A stretch of DNA of 40,620 nt from Octopus bimaculoides (taxonomy: Eukaryota). Where the stretch lies: the NCBI RefSeq assembly GCF_001194135.2, contig NC_068998.1:2272617-2313236 (forward strand), given 5' to 3'. Both the position numbers and the translations under genes were made by a program. Positions within the stretch are counted from its first letter, which is position 1, and every line of letters begins with the position of its first letter. The notes below the pieces were generated by a model, which saw only the letters and a list, made by a program, of their open reading frames with translations, searched no databases and was not told the origin of the DNA. Shown here piece after piece: positions 1 to 29,748 of the stretch.

Positions 1-896
1 TTTATAGATGGTTGGATGATCCCTTTCTCTGGGTTTGCTGCAGCTATTCCGAGAAGTTTTTCTACCGTTCCATCCGGCACCCCTGTATCGGCATCCAATA
101 CTAAGGTGTAATCAAATCGCCGGTTAAATATATTTTGCACGTCAGATGAATAGTAAAAGGTGGGCTGGTTATAAGGACGGGCCATCTTTCCATAATATTC
201 AATGTCAGTATATGTATAAGCAAAAGATTCTCCCTCAGATAGCAACATTAGATCTTGATATTGTCCACATTTACGTAAAACTTTACTGGTGCGGTGAATT
301 ACCATAAATTCTTGTGCAAATCGATCACATATTGAATCAAGGTGTTGACTAATGAAAATATCTTTTGGACACGTTTGATAATACATCCATACTTTCCTGT
401 AGCGGTCTTGATTGATATCATCATAGTAGCCATTAGCGAAACAGACACCTTCTTTGAAAAGTTCATCGTATATTAACTTCCGGTATTTATCACGACAATC
501 TAGTTCATGTATTTTGAGATCTTCTTCCGACGTTGCACTGACAAGAACAGCAGATACATTGAAACATAAATTGCCCATGAATGCTTGAAACATTGTCTGG
601 AAGCATTCTTCAATATCATCAACTGTAACTGCTAATAAGTTGTAGTTTAGTATGAGTGTGAAATTGTCAGCTACAGCCTTTGGATTTTCTCGATTTTTGC
701 CGCCGACAATCAATGTAGCAATCGTCTGCACAGGGAATTCGTAAACAGAACCTTGCAGGATTCCAAGCACAATGATAAGAAAAATACCTTGTGGTATGCT
801 TGTCTTCTGCCAGTCAATATTGAAAATATTTAAAACCAGTCCAGCAAGAGCCAGCGTAATCCATAGAGAAAAATAAAAATATATTTGCCTTCCCAT
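1..896 (-). CDS. 5' part (298 complete codons, open to the window edge) of a membrane-bound GT-A glycosyltransferase resembling bacterial OpgH/MdoH (GT2) and cyclic beta-1,2-glucan synthase Cgs/NdvB
   Basis: Manual translation from ATG 896 has no stop down to base 1: MGRQIYFYFSLWITLALAGLVLNIFNIDWQKTSIPQGIFLIIVLGILQGSVYEFPVQTIATLIVGG...FMVIHRTSKVLRKCGQYQDLMLLSEG...FDYTLVLDADTGVPDGTVEKLLGIAAANPEKGIIQPSI. Two N-terminal hydrophobic segments, RKxG at codons 208-211 and the DxD motif LDADT at codons 267-271. Compare OpgH (recalled) RKSGN...YMVVLDADSVM...LMEANPNAGIIQ and Cgs (recalled) RKRGKL...VITLDADT. In-frame TAA at 920-918 precedes the ATG. Confidence 0.8.
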   Translation of the reverse strand, partial: MGRQIYFYFSLWITLALAGLVLNIFNIDWQKTSIPQGIFLIIVLGILQGSVYEFPVQTIATLIVGGKNRENPKAVADNFTLILNYNLLAVTVDDIEECFQTMFQAFMGNLCFNVSAVLVSATSEEDLKIHELDCRDKYRKLIYDELFKEGVCFANGYYDDINQDRYRKVWMYYQTCPKDIFISQHLDSICDRFAQEFMVIHRTSKVLRKCGQYQDLMLLSEGESFAYTYTDIEYYGKMARPYNQPTFYYSSDVQNIFNRRFDYTLVLDADTGVPDGTVEKLLGIAAANPEKGIIQPSI

Positions 897-901
897 TGAC
901 C

Positions 902-920
902 CTGTAAATTCAGTTAATTA
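902..920 (-). promoter_or_regulatory. Probable 3' splice acceptor just upstream of the glycosyltransferase ATG (implies an upstream non-coding exon)
   Basis: Minus strand reads TAATTAACTGAATTTACAG|GGTCAATG, with AG at 903-902 five bases before the ATG and a branch-point-like TTAAC/CTGAA upstream. Confidence 0.4.
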
Positions 921-1317
921 TATTTTACTGCACTTTTTTTTTCTGTCGTTTTCGATTTTTAAAATATGTACAAATACTTCCTTGAATTATTTTAACACTT
1001 CTTTTCTTTCTCAATCTTGTTTCACTCCAGCCTCTCAAGAACAGTTTGTTTCTTTTTTTCTTTTTTGAGTAACTCTATTTCTTTATGTATAAATTAACAA
1101 ATAAATAAATATATATATATATGTATATAAATAATATAAACTGGTAAAGATTAAGCGTATCCTTTCAGTCTTTACCTGTCATTATACTGCAGTCATTTAA
1201 AACTAATATCTGAATGAAAAGTTTAAAGAGAGTTCCAACGTTTTGTGTGTTTTCTCTTCAATGAAGCATTAAAAAAACCGCAAGTTGCTTATATAGGAGC
1301 ACTTACGCGCACATGTA

Positions 1318-1348
<31 letters not shown>

Positions 1349-1776
1349 TTACATTTACATTTGTGCGTATATGTGTATGTATCTATATATTTATAGACTT
1401 GTTTGACTAGCTTTTGTAGTTACGTAAGGTAAAACGTAATTTGGGCGACTGGAAATATATTCGTTTTATGTCGTGTTTCTTGTCTTCAAATATCACGTAT
1501 GAGATAATATAGGTGTCTTCTTACCTATCGCTATAAGACGTCTACCTCCCTTCCTACTCCTATGTCCTTCCCTTTAATTCCTTTGTGTTGTAGGTGTGTG
1601 TGTGTGTGTGTTTGCGATGACAGTAAAATATACTTTCGTTTGTTACGCTTATTCTATTTCGTCAATGACCATAGTTCTCAGGATATGGAGAAAAACGTGC
1701 ACTCGGATCTCCGCTCCCACCAAAGAATGTAAATGTTTAATATCATTCTTATTCAACCCCTCCTTCATCATTTTGC

Positions 1777-1819
<43 letters not shown>

Positions 1820-3129
1820 GATCTTCTTCTACGCCACCCTTCCATTCTTCCCCACATCCCATTAATCTAAATATAGCAACAAGTGAATGCCGATTATCCA
1901 AATATCGATCCACCTTTCACTCTGTATGAAATAGTCAATCCTTTGCTCCCTTCACCTACCCTGCACTGTTCCATAATTCACCCCAGCCACCTATGGAGGC
2001 ACCGAACCCTCAGAAAGTGCCTCGAGTTAATACTATGAGCTACTTAGTCTGATTGCAAGGTTGTTTAAGCAGTGGGGGCACTGGATGCTGAACGAATGTT
2101 TAGTCAGTTTGATCGGCATCCCTATTTCCTATAAGGCTGGCGAAGGCAGCAGGAATCCAATTTCTTCCTCGTAGTAAATCTCTGTAAATTTATTTTTCAA
2201 CAGAGTCGCTAACAGCCATTAAAGTAAGACTTGCAAGAGATTTAGTGATTTTTAGACATTGATCATTGAAGAAAATTACCAGCAAAAATAAAATAAATAA
2301 AATTGCTGTCACTGGAAATGAAAGCCTCAAACACATCCACATAAACGTACCACAGGAAAAAATCTGGTTACTTCTAAAAAAACTAGTTCTATTTTGATAT
2401 CCATTTTTATAGCCTAACTCTATATCTAAGAGTTATACCTTTTAGGTTATAATGTTTGTAGCTCTAAATTTATCTTNNNNNNNNNNTACGACAAATTAAG
2501 TAAGCAAAGAAGTTTTTTTGTCAGGTTTCTATTCATATTTATTACGGAAATCTCCCTCTGATAAATAAAGAACATTTTTTTATTAGTTGCTTTAAACAAT
2601 CTTTTTTTTTTATATCAATGACTTTAAATAAATAGAAGAGATCTTATATATTAAAAATAAGATTATCATTTATATTTTTTTTACACGTTTTATTACAGTT
2701 TCTAAATTAAGTCTAATACTTAATTATGTACCAATTGTTATTGTTGTATGTCATTATAATAGCGAAAGATTGTCTTCGACCTAAACGAGTTTGGTTTAAT
2801 ATTATTTAAGATATATAGAAATATATTTCGATAGTTGTAGATTCGACTTAATTATTTTGTTTGTTATAATTTTGTAGTTTTTTTCTTTTTTGTAATTGAT
2901 ATGAAGTTGAATGGCTAACGCTCGCGCTCATAGCACATAGGCATTTGAATTAATTTCCTTTCACAATCCAGCCGTCCTTTCACACGGAATTTCGTCTGTC
3001 TTCAAACCATTGGCTCTGATGAGGCTTATATAAGGAAACTGAATTGTTTATATATCGAAAAATGTATACAAGTAGAAACAAATGGTTGGCTTCTTTGGTT
3101 TTCAATAATTGTTTATGTTATTTTATTAT

Positions 3130-3130
3130 T

Positions 3131-3168
<38 letters not shown>

Positions 3169-3179
3169 TTTCATCATCA

Positions 3180-3258
<79 letters not shown>
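3130..3258. repeat. Compound (CAT)n/(TAT)n microsatellite
   Basis: Directly visible; explains the poly-I/H/Y ORFs at 3044-3331. Confidence 0.95.
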
Positions 3259-3260
<2 letters not shown>

Positions 3261-3886
3261 GATGTCTCCTTCCTCGGCCGCTGCTGATTAAACCGTCAAA
3301 CTTCAGAACCAACATTTCTCTGCTCCCATAAACACTCTTTCTTCAGATCTGCTACTACCTCTGGAGCCTTCACAGAGGAAAAAGAAGAGACAGAGACAGA
3401 GACAGAAAAAAGGAAACTATTTAAAGACCATGGAAATATTTGCAAACCATTTCATTTAATTTTTTCTTCAATTNNNNNNNNNNTATATATATATATATAT
3501 ATTTAAAGTGCTAAAGTACGAAACGCCGAGGTCAACTTTGTTTTCCATTTTTCCGTTGAGGTTAGACGTGGAGAGGGATGGGCATAGCCAGGTCTGAAAT
3601 GGTCGTGAGAGGTTGTATGTCAAGATGGTACCCCGAGGATTCGATTATGAATTTAAGGTGTCATGGTATGATTCGAAAGATTGATTTGTGTGTGCTATAG
3701 GACTGCTCCAGTATGAGCTGTCCCGGGGCTATTCAACGGCAACTACCAGTGTGCCATGTTACTGAACAAACAGAACTGTCTTGGAGCTATGTAATAACAT
3801 CAAAATTAAGAATTATCAACAGCGGTTGTCTTGGGACTCCACATCGACACCATTAGGACTTCTCTAGTAGAATTTTCCTGTGATTA

Positions 3887-4203
3887 TGGCACTCCGTCGG
3901 TTACGACGACGACCATGAGGGTTCCAGTTGATCCGATCAACGGAACAGCCTGCTTGTGAAATTAACATGCAGGTGGCTGAGTACTCCACAGACATGCGTG
4001 TCCTTCACATGGTTCGCGGGGAGATTCAGCGCGACACAAGAATGTGATTAAATCTGGCCTTTTGAAATACAAGTACAACACATTTTTGCCAGTTGAGTGA
4101 ACAGGAGCAAGGTGAAATAAAACATCTTGCTCAAGGACACAACGCGCTGCTGGAAATCGAACTCACAACATTACAATCGCGGTCTGAACACCCTAACCAC
4201 TAG
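3887..4203 (-). mobile_element. tRNA-derived SINE (family A, near full length)
   Basis: Reverse complement shows an A box (TAGTGGTTAGGG), a B box (GTTCGATTTCC), GTGTCCTTGAGCAAG and the 3' body TTCCGTTGATCGGATCAACTGGAACCC...GTAACCGACGGAGTGCC; the same body recurs at 6660, 26150 and 38341. Confidence 0.8.
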
Positions 4204-5313
4204 AAATAGCAGTTAAATCTTTCCCAAATCATACACTACTGTATTGAAAAGAAGAGCACATTGGACAGTGTAATACGCAGAAGTAAAGATTTTTGGTTGT
4301 TCATAAAGAGATTTTCTCAGTAATATGTTTGTTTCTCGAGTCCTACGATTCGTAAGGTTGGATATCCAGATTCCGGGGGATATAAGAATAATTTTCACTG
4401 CCAAGGTATTTGTTAGTTTCAGAATGTATTTCCGTCGTCTGACTTTCACACCATTGGTTTAACCTAAATTAACTAGATTCACGAAATTAACGGAACTCCT
4501 TTGATTGGTAATTTTTTCTAGAGAAAATCACAAACTAGATTATTCCGGTTCTTATTAAGGAAGATAAAGCACAAGGCTACACAATGTAAAGAAAGTTATT
4601 TATGTACATGCATTAATTTTCCATTCGAGCAGGGTTAGGTAGATTTGCATATGAATTCTTGGAATGAGCATTCTAGATTTGAATACGTTCACAATAGCTC
4701 AATGTTAAATAGTCACCAAGACAATAAAGCGATTCCTGTTTTCTCACAAATACAGATCGATGCGACTCGCAATATTAGGATCCCAACTTAAATATATTCA
4801 ATGTAGATAAGGAAAAGCGAAGTTGCTTACTTATCGATCCGTGTGTATCATGTAAGTCTAGAAATAGGAGCGATGACCTCCTCTCGCAAAGACTAATCGT
4901 GTGTCGTTAGTCAGCTGAAGGAGATGTCTTCCTGGGGCTATAAATAACAGTAGCACTGTCCTGTATAGGATGTCACACTTAGTTGGCAAATATATTCTCA
5001 CTCACCTTGCTGTAAGTCATCGTTTTCTTTGTAGCAGCCGGTTCTCTCAATCCGTAGGTAATTATGATAAACTCTGCACGATTTTCGCATACCGCAGACA
5101 ACATTACAATGTATGAGAAGCCGTGTTCTTTCTTTTTCCTTTTTTTTAATTCTGCGTGTTTTATCTTGCAGGAAATCAAGTGCATCAGTAAACAACCATT
5201 TATGAGACACGAAAACCAATTCTGCATTCTATTTATTTGTTTATTTTAAAGTTTTGGTCACTTTTCCTCCAAAGTTAAAAAAATCTCTTACGATGACGAA
5301 ATACTGGGAAAAA

Positions 5314-5345
<32 letters not shown>

Positions 5346-5552
5346 AAACTGTTTCTGATTTAGGTACGAGGCCAGTATTTAAGAGAAGTGGGATTTAATT
5401 AGCCCTATCGATGCCAGCTCTACAGTGGTACGGCATTTTATCGAGCCTAGAGACTTGAAAAGCAAAATTGACCTTAGTAGGATTTGAACTCAGAACGTGA
5501 AATAGTCGAAAAAATACTACAAGGTATCTTGTGCGATGCTCTAACGATTCTA
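5346..5552 (-). mobile_element. SINE with Nin/Deu-type central domain (family B), degenerate
   Basis: Reverse complement contains GAGTTCAAATCC...GGTCAATTTTGCTTTTCAAGTC...CTCGATAAAATG, homologous to copies at 21395 and 23581. Confidence 0.65.
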
Positions 5553-5715
5553 GAATTTTTTTAGTTTCGGTACAAAGGGATAAATTGGTACGTAGACACA
5601 ACCACACACACATCTACAGATATCATAATCGTTGCTATTATGTTAAACAGTCGTATGTCCAAATTTGGACAACAGCGGAAGTGAGCTAGAACGTTAAAAC
5701 TTATATATGTTTATA

Positions 5716-5785
<70 letters not shown>

Positions 5786-5789
5786 TTTA

Positions 5790-6560
5790 TTTTGGTTTGG
5801 CTCAGGCTCGGTCTTATTCCTGGTAGGAATTATGTGGGTAACGGCTTACCACTTGCAACCTTAGGTATCCACAAGTTTTCAGCAGTCTTTCCAGTACTTG
5901 GAACCCTCACGATAATTTTTACTGTCCTTAAGAGACAAACCTTCTGTAGGAGCTCCACCGGGCATTCTATTTCAATCTCCTTCAGCCATTTCTCTATATC
6001 TTGGCTTACTGTTTCGAACGCACCAATTATTATAGGTACGGCTTTTACTGTTCGCATTCTCCAAATGCTTCCTATTTCAAACTATAAGAGATTGTATTTT
6101 TTCTTCCTCTTTCTTTAAGATCCTGGAATCAAACAGGCATTTGGGTCGATAAGTAAGCAACTTCGCTTTTCCTTATCTACAATCGTTATGTCTGGTCTAT
6201 TGTTTTCTAATTTCTTGTCCATTTGAAGAGGAATGTCCCACAGAATCTTACACTTCTCCGACTCCAGGACTCTTTCGACGCGATGACTGTGTCATGTGTT
6301 TCCAGCTTCAAATCCCCATTTCTGGCACAGTTTCCAGGGTATAACTTTTACAACTTGATCGTGCCTCCATTTCTAATATTCTTCCTGTGCCAACTTGGGG
6401 CATTCTGCCACAATGTGTGCCACTGTCTCGTTCTAAGTTCCACAGGTTCTACACTTTCCGACACGTTCTCTCCATATATATTTTTTTTCTCAAGTTGTTT
6501 GTTTTTATTGCTTGATCTTGGGCTGCTACAATTAGACTCTCTGTTTCTTTTTTTAATTGT
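5790..6560 (-). mobile_element. 3' fragment of an R4/Dong-clade non-LTR retrotransposon (CCHC knuckle + restriction-like endonuclease), pseudogenised, followed by a (TAA)n tract
   Basis: Minus-strand frames give LKKETESLIVAAQDQAIKTN, CRTCGT*NETVAHIVAECPKLAQEEY*KWRHD, ILWDIPLQMDKKLENNRPDITIVDKEKRSCLLID and VPIIIGAFETVSQDIEKWLKEIEIECPVELLQKVCLLRT. (TAA)n at about 5716-5785 lies at the 3' end, consistent with the known TAA-repeat targeting of Dong elements. Confidence 0.85.
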
Positions 6561-6659
6561 GTTAGCATCAATTTCGCCGACTTACGGACGGCAGCAGAAG
6601 ACGGAGAGAAGTGACGAAATCTAGTTGCGACGTCATCAACGAATGCCCCAGCGACCACA

Positions 6660-6955
6660 CGTTGGTTGGGTTCCAACTGATTTGATCAACGGAACAGCCT
6701 GTTCGTGAAATTAACGTGCAAGTGGCTGAGTACTCCACAGACCCTCGTATTTTTAACGTAGTTCTCAGAGAGATTCAGCTTGACACAGTGTGTGACAAGG
6801 CTGGCCATCGTTACAGGTAGAACTAATTTTTTGTGAGTTGGGTGGACTGGAGCAACATAAAATGTCTTGATGAAAGCTAAAATGCATCACCGGGATTCGA
6901 AAACTCGACCTTACGTTCGTATGCCGAATACACTAACCACTTAGCTACGCGCCCT
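6660..6955 (-). mobile_element. tRNA-derived SINE (family A)
   Basis: Homologous to 3887-4203 (GATCAACGGAACAGCCTG, GTGGCTGAGTACTCCACAGA, GGACTGGAGCAAC) with a tRNA-like head near 6900-6955. Confidence 0.8.
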
Positions 6956-7129
6956 CACGGTGTTACACCTGCTAAAAAATCGGATGGTCATGGCTGGAAC
7001 GCCTTTGACCCAAGGTACTGGATAAGGGTTGACCGGAGGACTAAACACCGGAATATTCAGTTTAATGTGTGTGTGTTTTGTTTATATGTCTGTATGCGTG
7101 TTTGCGTGTATGTATGCATGTGCCTGCAA

Positions 7130-7216
<87 letters not shown>
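7130..7216. repeat. (TG)n microsatellite
   Basis: Directly visible. Confidence 0.95.
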
Positions 7217-7219
<3 letters not shown>

Positions 7220-7850
7220 AAATATGTTGTCTAGTCCTATGTTCGGCTTTATTGAAAAGGCCTATGGCCGGTGGCACTCTAAGCATGACCGTTATGTTTC
7301 CAGAAATTGTATTCTTCCGGACAACTATCATAATTTATGCTGGTTTATGCTAATGTCTGTGTAGGAGTTTGAATATTTTCACACCATCTCGCGTGTGGGA
7401 GAGGAGAGAGGGGGAGAGAGTGAGAAAGAGAGAATCGTACGACAGAAATAGAAAGCTGTTTGTGAAGGTGTTTGTGCACGCTTGTGCGTGTATCTGTTAA
7501 TATTTGTATGAGTGTATGTTAGCGCGCGCGCGCGCGCGTGTAGCTTTGTGTTACCTAATCTGGGAAGATAACCTTCCTAACTGTAAATTCAATTCTTTGA
7601 AATTCGTAATCTCCTCACCCGTGACAATGTCTTCCTTTCGAGTATTTTTAATTGCAGAAGACATAAGGAGTGTCCCGATCCCTCGTGACGTGGGTAATCT
7701 ACAACAATAGCCAGGGACCCAGCATATTTACATTAGACACACAAGTAAATGGAAGCCTATATCAGGTCTGACAATCTGCTAGAAATGGCAGCCAAATTTC
7801 AAATCATACAGGCAGGTATTAAACAGACAGATATTAAACAGACATATAGA

Positions 7851-7890
<40 letters not shown>

Positions 7891-7902
7891 GTAGGTAGAT
7901 AG

Positions 7903-7972
<70 letters not shown>
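7851..7972. repeat. (AGAT)n microsatellite, adjoining a SINE family B 3' tail fragment at about 7973-8030 (minus)
   Basis: Directly visible; the adjacent TTTCTTTATTAGCCACACAGGG resembles the reverse complement of the 21570-21588 tail. Confidence 0.85.
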
Positions 7973-7973
<1 letters not shown>

Positions 7974-8042
7974 TGTTTCTTTATTAGCCACACAGGGCTG
8001 AACACAGAGGGAACAAGTTACAAAGTAGGGTTTTCTAAATCA

Positions 8043-8447
8043 CTGGATAAGTTCATCAGAGTCACCAGTCTTCGAAACAGGCGCCTGACAGCAAATGAGA
8101 TCGCTGCACAAGTAAGTGTGCCGGTGAAGCTAACGTGTCTCCTACAACCGTGAGGAGAAGACTCATTGCTGCCAGTCTAAATGGCCGTTGCGCTGCCAGA
8201 AGACCACTGATCCGACCTTTGAATAAAAGTAAGCGACTCGTGTGGTCCTGAAGACACCAAACATTGACCGTTGATCAATGAAAACGAGTCCTCTGGACTG
8301 ATGAATCAAAGTTTGAAATCTTCGGATCGCGGCAAAGAGTTTATGTGAGGCGAACAGATGACTCCTGAGTGTATGGTTCCAACTGTAAAGCGGAGTGGGG
8401 GAAGTGTGGTGATCTTGGGGTGTGTTGCAGGCAATAGTGTTGTGGAT
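8043..8447 (+). mobile_element. Tc1-family transposase pseudogene fragment
   Basis: LDKFIRVTSLRNRRLTANEIAAQ / VSPTTVRRRLIAASLNGRCAARRPLI...W*RHQTLTVDQ*KRVLWTDESKF / PTVKRSGGSVVILGC; first catalytic Asp in WTDESKF; stops and frameshifts. Confidence 0.9.
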
Positions 8448-9147
8448 ATGAGTTAATTATGTCATCCAATGACTGTCACTACACATTAATAAAATATTTC
8501 ACCAGAATCTCTCAGTTATTTCCATTTTGTTGATGTTTTTGAAAATAAGGTTAAATTTTCTTAAACTTTTGTATATATNNNNNNNNNNNNNNNNNNNNNN
8601 NNNNNNNNNNNNNNNNNNNNNNNNNNNNNNNNNNNNNNNNNNNNNNNNNNNNNNNNNNNNNNNNNNNNNNNNNNNNNNNNNNNNNNNNNNNNNNNNNNNN
8701 NNNNNNNNNNNNNNNNNNNNNNNNNNNNNNNNNNNNNNNNNNNNNNNNNNNNNNATATATATATATATATATAGTATATATAAATCTCAGTATGTGTGTA
8801 TAATGATTAACGCATACATTTCCACAATTCTCAACCGATTTTCACCAAACTTTACACACACATTATGTCTCAAGGATGGTCATGGTATTTGAACCCAGAA
8901 CATAAGAAGTCTTTAAAAAGCCGCTAAACGTTTTGTCCAAAGAGGAGTGTAGTGGATTAGAGCATAAACTGAGAGGAAGAGAGGAGGAAGTAACGGAAGA
9001 GAGATAGTGATGGTTACATAGTTTATGACGGCGGAAAACGGAGTCTTAGGAGCTAAAGAGGACATATTTTAATTACGTCGGATTTAGGCAAAAAGTTAAT
9101 TCAACCTCGGTGAGATAATGAGGTAAATTTGTTGGTGGGGATGTTTG

Positions 9148-10629: not shown

Positions 10630-11081
10630 TTAGCATTCCGAATCGGAAGACGTTTCAACTGTTCCACAGTAGAACGATTTGAAGGACTTCAACTGTTCGA
10701 ATCTCTTCCGTTCATTCTTCATCTTCTCTTTCCTTTTCCGACATCGATTTAACGATGACATTACGTTGGTTGCTGTGTTATCCGAAGTACCAATGCAAAG
10801 AGATGTCTCCGAAATATTCTCGAAACCTCCAGCTATGGATTGCTTTGTGTTCTCTGACGCTATTGCTGCTTCCATCATCTTCATTTGCAGTTTTTCAGTC
10901 TTTAGTCTATCGATCTCCAACGATTTCTTCGTTTCGTATCTTTTCCTTCTCTCTTTTTCACGTCTTCTAAAATCTGAGTAGTTGTCTCTCTTAGGGTGGT
11001 AGGACAGAGTCACGTCATTGCTTCGGATAGTTAATCCTGGATTATTATCTTTGATCCGGTGGTCAAGTCTGATTCTACCAT
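10630..11081 (-). CDS. Terminal coding exon of an uncharacterised basic, charged protein (predicted 158 aa)
   Basis: Polypyrimidine acceptor TTTTTTTCGTTTATTTTTAG| (AG 11083-11082), phase 1, 149 open codons GRIRLDHRIKDNNPG...ETSSDSEC then TAA; AATAAA about 50 nt downstream (10578-10573). Confidence 0.7.
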
Positions 11082-11752
11082 CTAAAAATAAACGAAAAAA
11101 AATAAAAACAAGCATTAATAAATCTGATAAAACAAGTTAATGTCTTGTGTGGTGGTGGTGATGGTGGGGATGAGGAGGGGAGGTGACGGTGGCGGAGGCA
11201 ACGGTGGGGGAATGTAGGTAGAAAAATATTAACTTGACGGACGAGATATCTTGCGGCATCCGCTTTGGCTCACATTCTACATCGTACGACAAGACCCAGT
11301 AAAAAAAAAAGGTCATAGGCTTGGAAAGTGCAACCAGCTTCATGCCAGACGATTTTTTCTAGGACTTGGGGGGGGGGGTCTCGCGCATAACAAAACGCAA
11401 TAAAGTGCATAATACATTATTTAATTATTTGATTATTACATACATAATACATGTGCATTACATGTCGCTAGGTTCACAGACAACAGGTGGACTTGTGCAG
11501 TTGCCGAATGGTATTCAAGAGATTGGAAAAGCCCACTTGGAAGGCGTCCAAGGTGATGGGAAGACTATTTAATAAAGTGATTTGGATCAAAATAGGAAAG
11601 AATGATGCAATCAAGACAGAATTGGAAGCGCATTGTGATCAGCGGTGTGTAACAGGATCTGATGGTCTGTTCGATACTATGACACTGTTATGTATTACAT
11701 CTATACTATATACGAGGGGGTTTAAATTTAGGACTTACAGTATCGTGTAAGG

Positions 11753-29188: not shown

Positions 29189-29748
29189 GCACACATACAT
29201 ATACATATATATATGGATGGGTGAGGGTAGTTCCAGATTTGCATCAAGATGGACACAATTGAATGCCTTTAATCATAAGACAGTTCAATAACTAAACAAC
29301 GGCAATTATTTTCACACTAAATTCCACAATAAACATAATGTACACCATCTGAAAGTTACATTTGGTGGGTGTGGGATGTCTGTCAGTATGTATGTGTACG
29401 TTCCTACTAATTTTTTTTTAACGGTTGGTATTAGGAAGGGTGTCCAGCCATAAAAACCATGCTGAAGCAGACACTGGGGCTTGATGTAGTCTTTGGACAC
29501 ATTGGAACCCATCAAATCAACCAGCCCATGCCAGCATGAAACATGAACATTACGTGATGACAACGATGAGGAAATTCCAATATAACCATGGGAGCCAATC
29601 AGGGGACATTGGCAGCAACCACGTTGGGATGATGCATTTTACGTGCCACCAACACGGGAGCCAGTCAGGCGGACCTGGCATCGACCACATTTTGATGATG
29701 CTTTTTATGTGCCACCAGAACGGGAGCCAGTCAGGAAGCACTGTCCAC
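28948..29748. mobile_element. Cluster of older family C repeats (28948-29138 +, 29421-29570 +, 29585-29748 -)
   Basis: GTTGGCATTAGGAAGGG and GTTGGTATTAGGAAGGG motifs with GAT tails; internal roughly 70-bp GGGAGCCAGTCAGG units. Confidence 0.7.

Follow-up and report, generated by a model that had tools for sequence, protein, structure and literature searches.

The first 896 bases of a 40,620-nt stretch of Octopus bimaculoides DNA (hereafter the window; NC_068998.1, positions 2,272,617 to 2,313,236 of the forward strand) encode the N-terminal part of a predicted membrane glycosyltransferase (GT). Its closest characterised relatives, as supported by sequence comparison, are the bacterial enzymes OpgH/MdoH and the GT84 domain of Cgs. 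On balance, we consider it probable that the window carries the 5' part, 298 codons, of a functional host gene that lacks introns and encodes a synthase of the OpgH/Cgs superfamily, for which a beta-1,2-glucan would be the most likely product. We have high confidence that the host gene is real and that its protein is a membrane glycosyltransferase of that superfamily. The enzyme is an uncharacterised variant of the OpgH/Cgs synthases found in eukaryotes and giant viruses; it is less singular than was supposed in a first-pass annotation, made from the letters of the window, and databases have already flagged it automatically.

Translation of window positions 896 to 1 on the reverse strand gave 298 sense codons without a stop, starting with MGRQIYFYF and reaching GIIQPSI at the window edge, which bears out the uninterrupted open reading frame (ORF) of at least 298 codons described in the first-pass annotation. 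The same annotation attributed the absence of this ORF from a program-made list to its leaving the window. It does leave the window, but because position 1 directly adjoins a 6,184-N assembly gap and not further assembled sequence. The source record is chromosome record CM046618.1 (55.6 Mb) of assembly GCA_001194135.2, in which window 1–8578 corresponds base for base to L002 17097–25674 and the gap occupies L002 10913–17096, so that window position 1 is L002 17097. The ORF and the elements around its 5' end are as follows.

1..896, reverse strand: codons 1–298 of the OpgH/Cgs-like glycosyltransferase, open in translation and cut by the window start
1..274, reverse strand: overlap with unplaced contig LGKD02005792.1 (L001), 274/274 identity
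894..896, reverse strand: start codon ATG, the same start as used in the Octopus vulgaris ortholog
902..908, reverse strand: TTTACAG, candidate 3' splice acceptor for an intron in the 5' untranslated region, ending 5 nt before the ATG
918..920, reverse strand: in-frame TAA nine codons upstream of the ATG, closing the frame 5' of it

The TTTACAG is identical in O. vulgaris, but the whole 320-nt region upstream of the ATG is about 95% identical there anyway, and the paralog described below is without the AG of the candidate acceptor.

A second copy of the N-terminal half lies across the gap (L002 10016–10912, forward strand) and is likewise cut by it. The two copies are on opposite strands, converge on the gap, and are 89% identical in protein and 93.9% identical in DNA. 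Identity is about 90% over the first 600 nt of coding sequence and 99%–100% over the last ~290 nt before the gap, a rise that suggests gene conversion or a collapsed inverted repeat. Since the ends of the two paralogs are nearly identical, the assembler stopped at the same codon in both. Contig L001 (4,112 bp, same assembly) shares 274 of 274 bases with the window copy and 289 of 290 with the paralog across the gap. Joined to the window copy, it yields an uninterrupted 667-codon ORF with a stop, codons 299–667 lying on L001. The completed frame, which the first-pass annotation had proposed to recover, brings with it SHD and R.RRW motifs and C-terminal membrane helices; the early stop or frameshift beyond the window that it had also considered is absent from the joined frame, which stays open to codon 667.

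The locus has a counterpart in O. vulgaris, where an uninterrupted 654-codon ortholog lies on the 84-Mb chromosome OX597831.1 (L014 10001–11965) and a convergent neighbour, with a product of 667 aa, lies about 10 kb downstream. Codons 1–298 of the window ORF were 93% identical to the O. vulgaris protein P0001. In both Octopus species the public synthase gene models are incorrect, as is the assembly of the O. bimaculoides locus. The O. bimaculoides model (P0003, 346 aa, L002 10001–23440) is a chimera extending over 13.4 kb and bridging the gap and the window copy. The O. vulgaris model (P0001, 410 aa, L014 10001–12422) is shorter than the intact 654-codon ORF. The assembly gap and a spurious intron call explain why the models are short.

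The ORF has the properties of a constrained host gene. Its GC content is 38%, compared with 34%–36% in the flanks, and the ratio of nonsynonymous to synonymous substitution (dN/dS) between it and the O. vulgaris ortholog is 0.21, with a dS of 0.148. Chance would not produce an ORF of 298 codons in DNA of 36% GC that also has 90 related protein clusters at E<=1e-30. Neither octopus nor the hemichordate Saccoglossus has introns in the gene; the Saccoglossus homolog consists of one exon, flanked by a GMC-oxidoreductase gene and an MIS13 gene. We rejected both a contaminant and a pseudogene because GC content matches the flanks, the upstream region is conserved, and dN/dS is 0.21. Microbial contamination or an assembly misjoin over bases 1–896 might be suspected from an ORF that adjoins a gap and continues on an unplaced contig, but we regard the chance of this as negligible. 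The ORF lies in a stretch, window 1–2476, that is gap-free and contains (TTG)16 and CA/TG microsatellites of animal type (the first N-run is at 2477–2486), just as the first-pass annotation had observed in arguing against contamination. Beyond its host-like composition and constraint, the start of the window is identical to the chromosome record over 1–8578, the independently assembled O. vulgaris genome has the same convergent pair on its 84-Mb chromosome, and the 320 upstream nucleotides are conserved between the two species.

As modelled, the complete protein of about 667 aa has two transmembrane (TM) helices at the N-terminus and a bundle of membrane and interface helices at the C-terminus, with a GT-A domain, predicted to be cytosolic, between them. 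The two N-terminal hydrophobic segments recognised in the first-pass annotation were recovered by hydropathy, and its motifs HRxxxVLRKCG, LVLDADT, and AANPEKGIIQP are all present in the window ORF. The features of the encoded part are listed below.

816..887, reverse strand: predicted TM helix 1, aa 4–27, from hydropathy; helix at residues 2–28 of the ortholog model
729..800, reverse strand: predicted TM helix 2, aa 33–56, from hydropathy; helices at residues 36–66 of the ortholog model
630..656, reverse strand: putative GT-A strand beta1 LILNYNLLA, aa 81–89, from the model strand and motif alignment with OpgH ALIMPICNED
531..551, reverse strand: putative GT-A strand beta2 AVLVSAT, aa 116–122, from the model strand and motif alignment; Ala replaces the Asp of OpgH LSDS/LSDT
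252..296, reverse strand: HRTSKVLRKCGQYQD, aa 201–215, putative strand beta3 and RKxG helix, equivalent to OpgH RKSGNIDD
114..251, reverse strand: family segment between RKxG and DxD, aa 216–261, with conserved YTYxD..YG..AR...P.F; only ~9 residues in E. coli OpgH
84..104, reverse strand: LVLDADT, aa 265–271, containing DxD; the invariant residues D268 and D270 correspond to Cgs D624 and D626
9..23, reverse strand: GIIQP, aa 292–296, conserved strand after DxD, shared with OpgH GIIQS and Cgs LLQP

The remaining catalytic motifs, VLSHDTFEAA (aa 366–375) and RERRWNRGE (aa 401–409), lie on the L001 continuation and occur in all orthologs; they align with ILSHDFVEAA and KRDRRWCHGN of E. coli OpgH. 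In a 40-sequence alignment spanning phyla, D268, D270, D370, and R404 are invariant and R407 is not, and S120, A121, and T122 on strand beta2 are nearly invariant. The structure model, made by AlphaFold with the family alignment, is of the Argonauta ortholog, which is 81% identical to the octopus protein. The model has a predicted local distance difference test score (pLDDT) of 87.9 and a predicted TM-score (pTM) of 0.87, and shows the two N-terminal helices, the GT-A strand order, and the C-terminal helical bundle. In a Foldseek search of the PDB with this model, Cgs ranked first (8rf9/8rfe/8rf0, E 1e-14 to 3.5e-13, TM-scores 0.55–0.58), followed by BcsA, hyaluronan synthases, plant CesA, Fks1, and chitin synthases. 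A viral structure library returned generic GT2 matches only, at ~12% identity.

The motif data also bear on whether the window ORF might be a decaying pseudogene, or encode a protein that is no longer catalytic and has taken on a different function. The canonical Asp of strand beta2 is missing, the public models are shortened to 346 and 410 aa, and the 3' half is not assembled in place. We nevertheless find this reading very unlikely: two Octopus species have uninterrupted ORFs of 654–667 codons, dN/dS indicates constraint, the DxD, SHD, and RW residues are invariant in 40 sequences across phyla, and the gap and spurious intron call account for the shortened models.

Placement in the OpgH/Cgs superfamily emerged from profile comparisons. 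Pfam gave nothing usable for the window ORF, the sole entry being DUF7832 at E=0.72. The Pfam GT2 families (PF13632, PF00535, and PF13641) did not match it, and its homologs scored 13–17 bits against thresholds of 23–27, although some distant family members have precomputed PF13632 matches. Among NCBIfam models, essentially only those for MdoH/OpgH matched, with 13.7 bits for the window fragment and 35–43 bits for longer homologs; neither reached the curated cut-offs of the MdoH equivalog models (PRK05454), 328–1131 bits. Single-sequence searches of the PDB returned nothing, or a chance co-chaperone match at E=1. With the family profile, the only PDB match was the GT domain of Cgs/NdvB (8rf9/8rf0, E=7e-6), in an alignment spanning LDADT, QP, GKGL, LSHD..E, and R.RW.RG. 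Comparison by hhalign gave 97.5% probability against E. coli OpgH alone; when true OpgH proteins were supplied as an alignment, the figure was 99.4% (E=7e-22), over 480 columns that take in the C-terminal membrane region. The OpgH/Cgs-type arrangement proposed in the first-pass annotation is thus the one on which NCBIfam, the Cgs profile match, hhalign, and Foldseek agree.

Within this superfamily, sequence features place the octopus protein in a separate clade, neither OpgH proper nor a GT84 member. It is not filed under either name because of an insert of ~37 residues, the lost beta2 Asp, and the failed score cut-offs. The first-pass annotation had remarked on a long spacer between RKxG and DxD and raised a distinct subfamily, and both points held. 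The spacer is 60 residues in octopus and 60–63 across the tested animal, dinoflagellate, and viral members, compared with 23 in E. coli OpgH and 38–39 in Cgs-length proteins. At the beta2 position, alignment by MAFFT combined with secondary structure shows Ala in octopus and Val in the giant virus; the outlying members have Ser, Thr, or Gly there. The clade signature comprises RKCGQYQDL, the 60–63-residue spacer with YTYxD..YG..AR, FDYTLVLDxDT, VP(I/V)DVLSHDTFEAA, RERRWN.GE, and a non-acidic beta2 S-x-T, and all of these elements were found in the joined octopus ORF and in animal, dinoflagellate, and viral members.

The family is spread across several groups of animals, dinoflagellates, and giant viruses. 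We searched a set of 5.8 billion proteins and ran an exhaustive hidden Markov model (HMM) search over 1.84 billion representatives; the HMM search returned 90 clusters at E<=1e-30 and 137 at E<=1e-10, with true OpgH and Cgs-length proteins appearing only at E ~1e-10 to 1e-14 against the family profile. Among named sources, the gene was found in bivalves (Saccostrea, Sinanodonta, Potamilus, Dreissena, Pinctada, Mizuhopecten, Mya, Mactra, Argopecten, Ylistrum, Mercenaria, Mytilus, and Tegillarca), gastropods (Haliotis, Patella, Lottia, Littorina, Batillaria, Babylonia, and Nucella), cephalopods (Octopus and Argonauta, with two loci), hemichordates (Saccoglossus, Ptychodera, and Glandiceps), and the nemertean Tubulanus. 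A search seeded with non-mollusc members found no animal phylum beyond molluscs, hemichordates, and the nemertean. Consecutive locus tags on single contigs in Sinanodonta woodiana (ACJMK2_005017/18/20/22) and Dreissena polymorpha (DPMN_165331/33/35) point to tandem arrays, which indicates lineage-specific expansion in freshwater bivalves.

Outside animals, dinoflagellates with a member are Biecheleria cincta, whose protein is 41% identical to that of octopus, Noctiluca scintillans, and Gymnodinium smaydae, and many marine metatranscriptome sequences also belong to the family. A giant-virus member of 600 aa (P0155) is encoded on an 83-kb marine contig (JGI Ga0181417_1000004, L006 10001–11803), together with a major capsid protein of nucleocytoplasmic large DNA viruses (NCLDV), DVNP, DUF5755, P8_CR, PCNA, and topoisomerase II. 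Relatives of P0155 are present in giant-virus metagenome-assembled genomes, and further viral contigs (L007, L008, and L010–L013) carry the family. The viral synthase gene always has a 917-aa ORF before it and a conserved 512-aa ORF after it, neither with a Pfam match. Bacterial OpgH and Cgs, to which the first-pass annotation likened the protein, are more distant than these dinoflagellate and giant-virus sequences. A scan of 185,579 GTDB species genomes with two clade-specific peptide patterns, which is blind to distant relatives, found no close one. Outlying members (P0180; P0182, L016 5729–7423; and P0195; E 1e-41 to 1e-51) lie on short gene-dense metagenome contigs. A Clp protease is encoded on one of these contigs, and one cluster member bears the label of a DCC thiol-disulfide oxidoreductase fusion.

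The family is not wholly new to databases. RefSeq and UniRef automatically name several mollusc members "glucans biosynthesis glucosyltransferase H-like," so the family is not quite unreported, as the first-pass annotation had it, but no paper on these members was found, nor did a literature search find one on an OpgH-like enzyme from any animal, dinoflagellate, or giant virus.

We considered how the gene reached the octopus using a neighbour-joining tree of 510 columns with 100 bootstrap replicates. Support was 100% for cephalopods, for hemichordates, and for animals plus the dinoflagellate to the exclusion of the giant-virus sequence; molluscs were exclusive of the other labelled groups in 51% of replicates, and animals excluded the dinoflagellate in 9%. 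The tree did not resolve the branching order of molluscs, hemichordates, nemertean, and dinoflagellates. The cephalopod clade sits inside the mollusc sequences, and from these sequences the gene appears to be old within molluscs, with a history inside the phylum that looks vertical. The octopus gene is not a cephalopod-only acquisition, as had first been proposed, because many molluscs, hemichordates, and a nemertean share the family; it occurs in bivalves, gastropods, Argonauta, and three hemichordates besides the nemertean. A direct transfer of a bacterial OpgH or Cgs gene into the cephalopod lineage, followed by domestication there, would fit the bacterial source of the nearest characterised enzymes and the intronless gene. 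We judge it highly improbable in view of the orthologs across three mollusc classes and two other phyla, the single, fully supported cephalopod clade within molluscs, the dinoflagellate and giant-virus origin of the closest non-animal sequences, the negative GTDB scan, and the distance of bacterial OpgH/Cgs relatives, which score only E 1e-10 to 1e-18 against the profile.

Vertical descent of an old eukaryotic or early-animal gene with many losses and no horizontal movement is a more credible history, though one we still think rather unlikely. Branching inside molluscs is roughly by class, the gene is single- to low-copy in normal animal gene neighbourhoods under purifying selection, and its presence in deuterostome and lophotrochozoan phyla fits a bilaterian ancestor. 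Set against these points are named animal matches from three phyla only, even with a non-mollusc profile, the intronless gene in octopus and Saccoglossus, the 9% of replicates in which animals exclude the dinoflagellate, and the giant-virus contigs that carry the family and offer a possible vehicle for transfer. The gene has possibly moved horizontally among marine eukaryotes, perhaps via giant viruses.

Bacterial and dinoflagellate relatives provide clues to function. A bacterial group that we term OpgH-like2 (P0216, P0225, and P0229; ~620 aa) shares the extended RKxG–DxD segment with the octopus family motif for motif (K.WG.YQDL and Y.D..YG...R....F) and matches the family profile at 8.5e-18, slightly better than true OpgH (~1e-10). 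It differs in keeping the SDT Asp on beta2 and in having a still longer insert, and is only distantly related. The P0216 gene (L015 1514–3394) overlaps by 4 nt, and is translationally coupled to, a PF10091 gene (L015 3391–4731), the protein of which matches 5gzh, a GH144 endo-beta-1,2-glucanase of solved structure (E=1.6e-34), and XCC2207 (E=2.7e-53). The contig is bacterial, judged by its RHS, Big_13, and PPC domains, and an RHS/Big_13 protein follows the PF10091 gene. From this gene order, P0216 and the GH144-type gene look like a split, Cgs-like two-gene system, and the overlap ties the nearest bacterial relatives to beta-1,2-glucan chemistry. No description of such a P0216/GH144-type system, and no experiments on OpgH-like2, were found in the literature.

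In dinoflagellate and marine-protist transcripts, the synthase core lies between the halves of an ABCC/MRP-type transporter in proteins of ~2,200 aa. These fusions recur over many clusters and complete transcripts (P0135, P0139, P0140 [Gymnodinium smaydae], P0295, and P0308–P0317) and hint that the product is tied to membrane export. Single cases among P0141 and P0142 have the core fused to an MFS transporter, with the core after the MFS part, or to an FH2 domain. We considered and rejected a Cgt-like identity for the dinoflagellate ABC part, which is of the eukaryotic ABCC/MRP type; for that reason any parallel with Cgs and Cgt is by analogy only.

The architecture matches that of membrane-embedded processive GT2-type synthases. 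In Cgs, D527 and D624 are ligands of uridine diphosphate (UDP), D739 is the catalytic base, R773 lies in the RW motif, R776 is functionally important, and D624A/D626A/D739A inactivates the GT domain (PMC10901819). Cgs D624, D626, D739, R773, and R776 align with octopus D268, D270, D370, R404, and R407. By this correspondence, the octopus enzyme would bind a UDP-sugar, most likely UDP-glucose, through D268 and D270 of the DxD motif; D370 of the SHD motif would act as the catalytic base that deprotonates the acceptor; and the RW.R motif (R404/W405/R407) would hold the terminus of the growing chain. The short basic N-terminus and the basic stretch after TM helix 2 would place the GT domain in the cytosol. 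The chain may be extended processively and passed through or along the C-terminal membrane bundle to the non-cytosolic side of whichever membrane is involved. The most likely product would be a beta-1,2-linked glucan or oligosaccharide.

UDP-glucose and beta-1,2 linkage are our best guesses because they are those of the only characterised relatives and because of the GH144 linkage. A beta-1,2-glucan product is itself a tentative identification, somewhat short of probable, and we hold it there because of the remote homology, the lost beta2 Asp, and the lack of an animal beta-1,2-glucan in the source consulted. Several observations weigh against the interpretation of the gene as a whole as well as of its product. 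The similarity to characterised enzymes is remote (28%–29% identity over ~160 aligned columns, 35–43 bits), such that donor and linkage specificity cannot be read off from it. The UDP-coordinating beta2 Asp (Cgs D527, OpgH LSDS/T) is replaced, and nucleotide binding may for this reason differ from that of GT2 synthases. For beta2, hhalign also offers another low-confidence register (LLSEG against ILSDS); we set aside this N-terminal register, in which OpgH RKSGN falls against a gap, as it conflicts with the model strand order and with MAFFT. The predicted structure is that of the Argonauta ortholog and not of the octopus protein itself. L001 is tied to the window copy by one discriminating base only, and may instead be a collapse of the 3' halves of both paralogs. 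Finally, the source consulted gives Gram-negative bacteria, in which beta-1,2-glucans function in osmoadaptation and in interaction with hosts, and one green alga as the producers of these polymers, and describes no animal beta-1,2-glucan or eukaryotic synthase.

An enzyme of the same fold and chemistry could make something else, using another UDP-sugar or linkage or adding a short glycan to a lipid or protein acceptor, and we treat this as a realistic possibility. It gains from the remoteness of OpgH and Cgs, from the loss of the UDP-contacting Asp and the 37-residue insert beside the active site, from the range of products made by related folds (cellulose, hyaluronan, chitin, and beta-1,3-glucan), and from the absence of any animal producer of beta-1,2-glucan in the source consulted. 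It loses from the fact that, among NCBIfam and PDB sequence profiles, only beta-1,2-glucan synthases matched, from the OpgH/Cgs motif forms (SHD for TED and RxRRW for QxxRW), and from the operon linkage of the bridging bacterial group to a GH144-type enzyme. For a beta-1,2-glucan synthase, a wider account can be proposed, which we offer as speculative and on present evidence unlikely to hold in full. Molluscs, hemichordates, and nemerteans would make beta-1,2-glucan or a related glucan with a synthase moved among marine eukaryotes, plausibly via giant viruses or dinoflagellates, and derived ultimately from a bacterial GH144-linked OpgH-like gene; the dinoflagellate ABCC fusions would be single-polypeptide synthase-exporters analogous, not homologous, to Cgs plus Cgt.

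The family is conserved, constrained, and often multi-copy over molluscs and two other marine invertebrate phyla. This pattern implies that animals have a glycan that has gone unrecognised and that might act in mucus, egg coats, the extracellular matrix, adaptation to osmotic conditions, or interaction with microbes. If the beta-1,2-glucan product is correct, animals would make a polymer class not reported from them, and the family offers a eukaryotic beta-1,2-glucan synthase candidate that can be expressed. Being scattered over dinoflagellates and giant viruses, the family is also well suited to testing for gene flow among marine eukaryotes, and the transporter fusions are a natural experiment on coupling synthesis to export.

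The rest of the window has no other credible gene; it is dense in di-, tri-, and tetranucleotide microsatellites and contains eleven N-runs, which together amount to 3,508 N. At 29590–29735 there are 2.2 copies of a 66-bp unit (83% match). A Lys/Arg/Glu-rich ORF of 161 aa (10630–11115, reverse strand) lies beneath an annotated 158-aa model (L002 27726–29685) and has no credible Pfam match; no credible domain was found in the other ORFs of the window. No OpgG-like ORF is present in the window, and mollusc genomes were not searched for one.

Comparison with known systems places the octopus protein near two bacterial synthases. OpgH/MdoH, a GT2 enzyme of E. coli and other Proteobacteria, makes the backbone of osmoregulated periplasmic glucans. 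Like the octopus protein, it has TM helices, a cytosolic GT-A domain, and then a C-terminal membrane domain, and the RK.G..D, LDADS/T, GIIQ, LSHD.EAA, and R.RRW..G motifs are common to both. Identity is only ~28% and limited to the core, however, and the octopus family differs in its ~37-residue RKxG–DxD insert, in SAT in place of SDS/SDT on beta2, in being hosted by eukaryotes and giant viruses, and, for the octopus protein, in the absence of the long N-terminal cytoplasmic region of E. coli OpgH (667 compared with 847 aa).

Cgs is both the only sequence-profile match in the PDB (E=7e-6) and the best fold match (E=1e-14, TM-score 0.58). Its active-site residues D624, D626, D739, and R773 correspond to invariant residues of the octopus family, and R776 has R407 as its counterpart. 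Cgs is far larger, at ~2,800 aa with N-terminal, GH144-like cyclase, and GH94 phosphorylase domains, none of which is found in the 667-aa octopus protein. Its spacer is 38–39 residues, and its D527 is without a conserved acidic counterpart in the octopus family register. Cgs works through a tyrosine-linked intermediate and has no export channel, and its cyclase domain is GH144-like (PMC10901819).

The resemblance to BcsA, hyaluronan synthase, CesA, and chitin synthase is broader. These share the general fold (Foldseek E 1e-10 to 1e-4), in which the GT domain sits beneath a bundle of membrane helices, as well as a DxD, a catalytic Asp, and an RW motif. TM-scores are lower, at 0.24–0.48, and identity is 8%–12%, and the octopus family is without PilZ or other accessory domains. 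Whereas these synthases have TED and QxxRW, the octopus family has SHD and R.RRW, the forms found in OpgH and Cgs.

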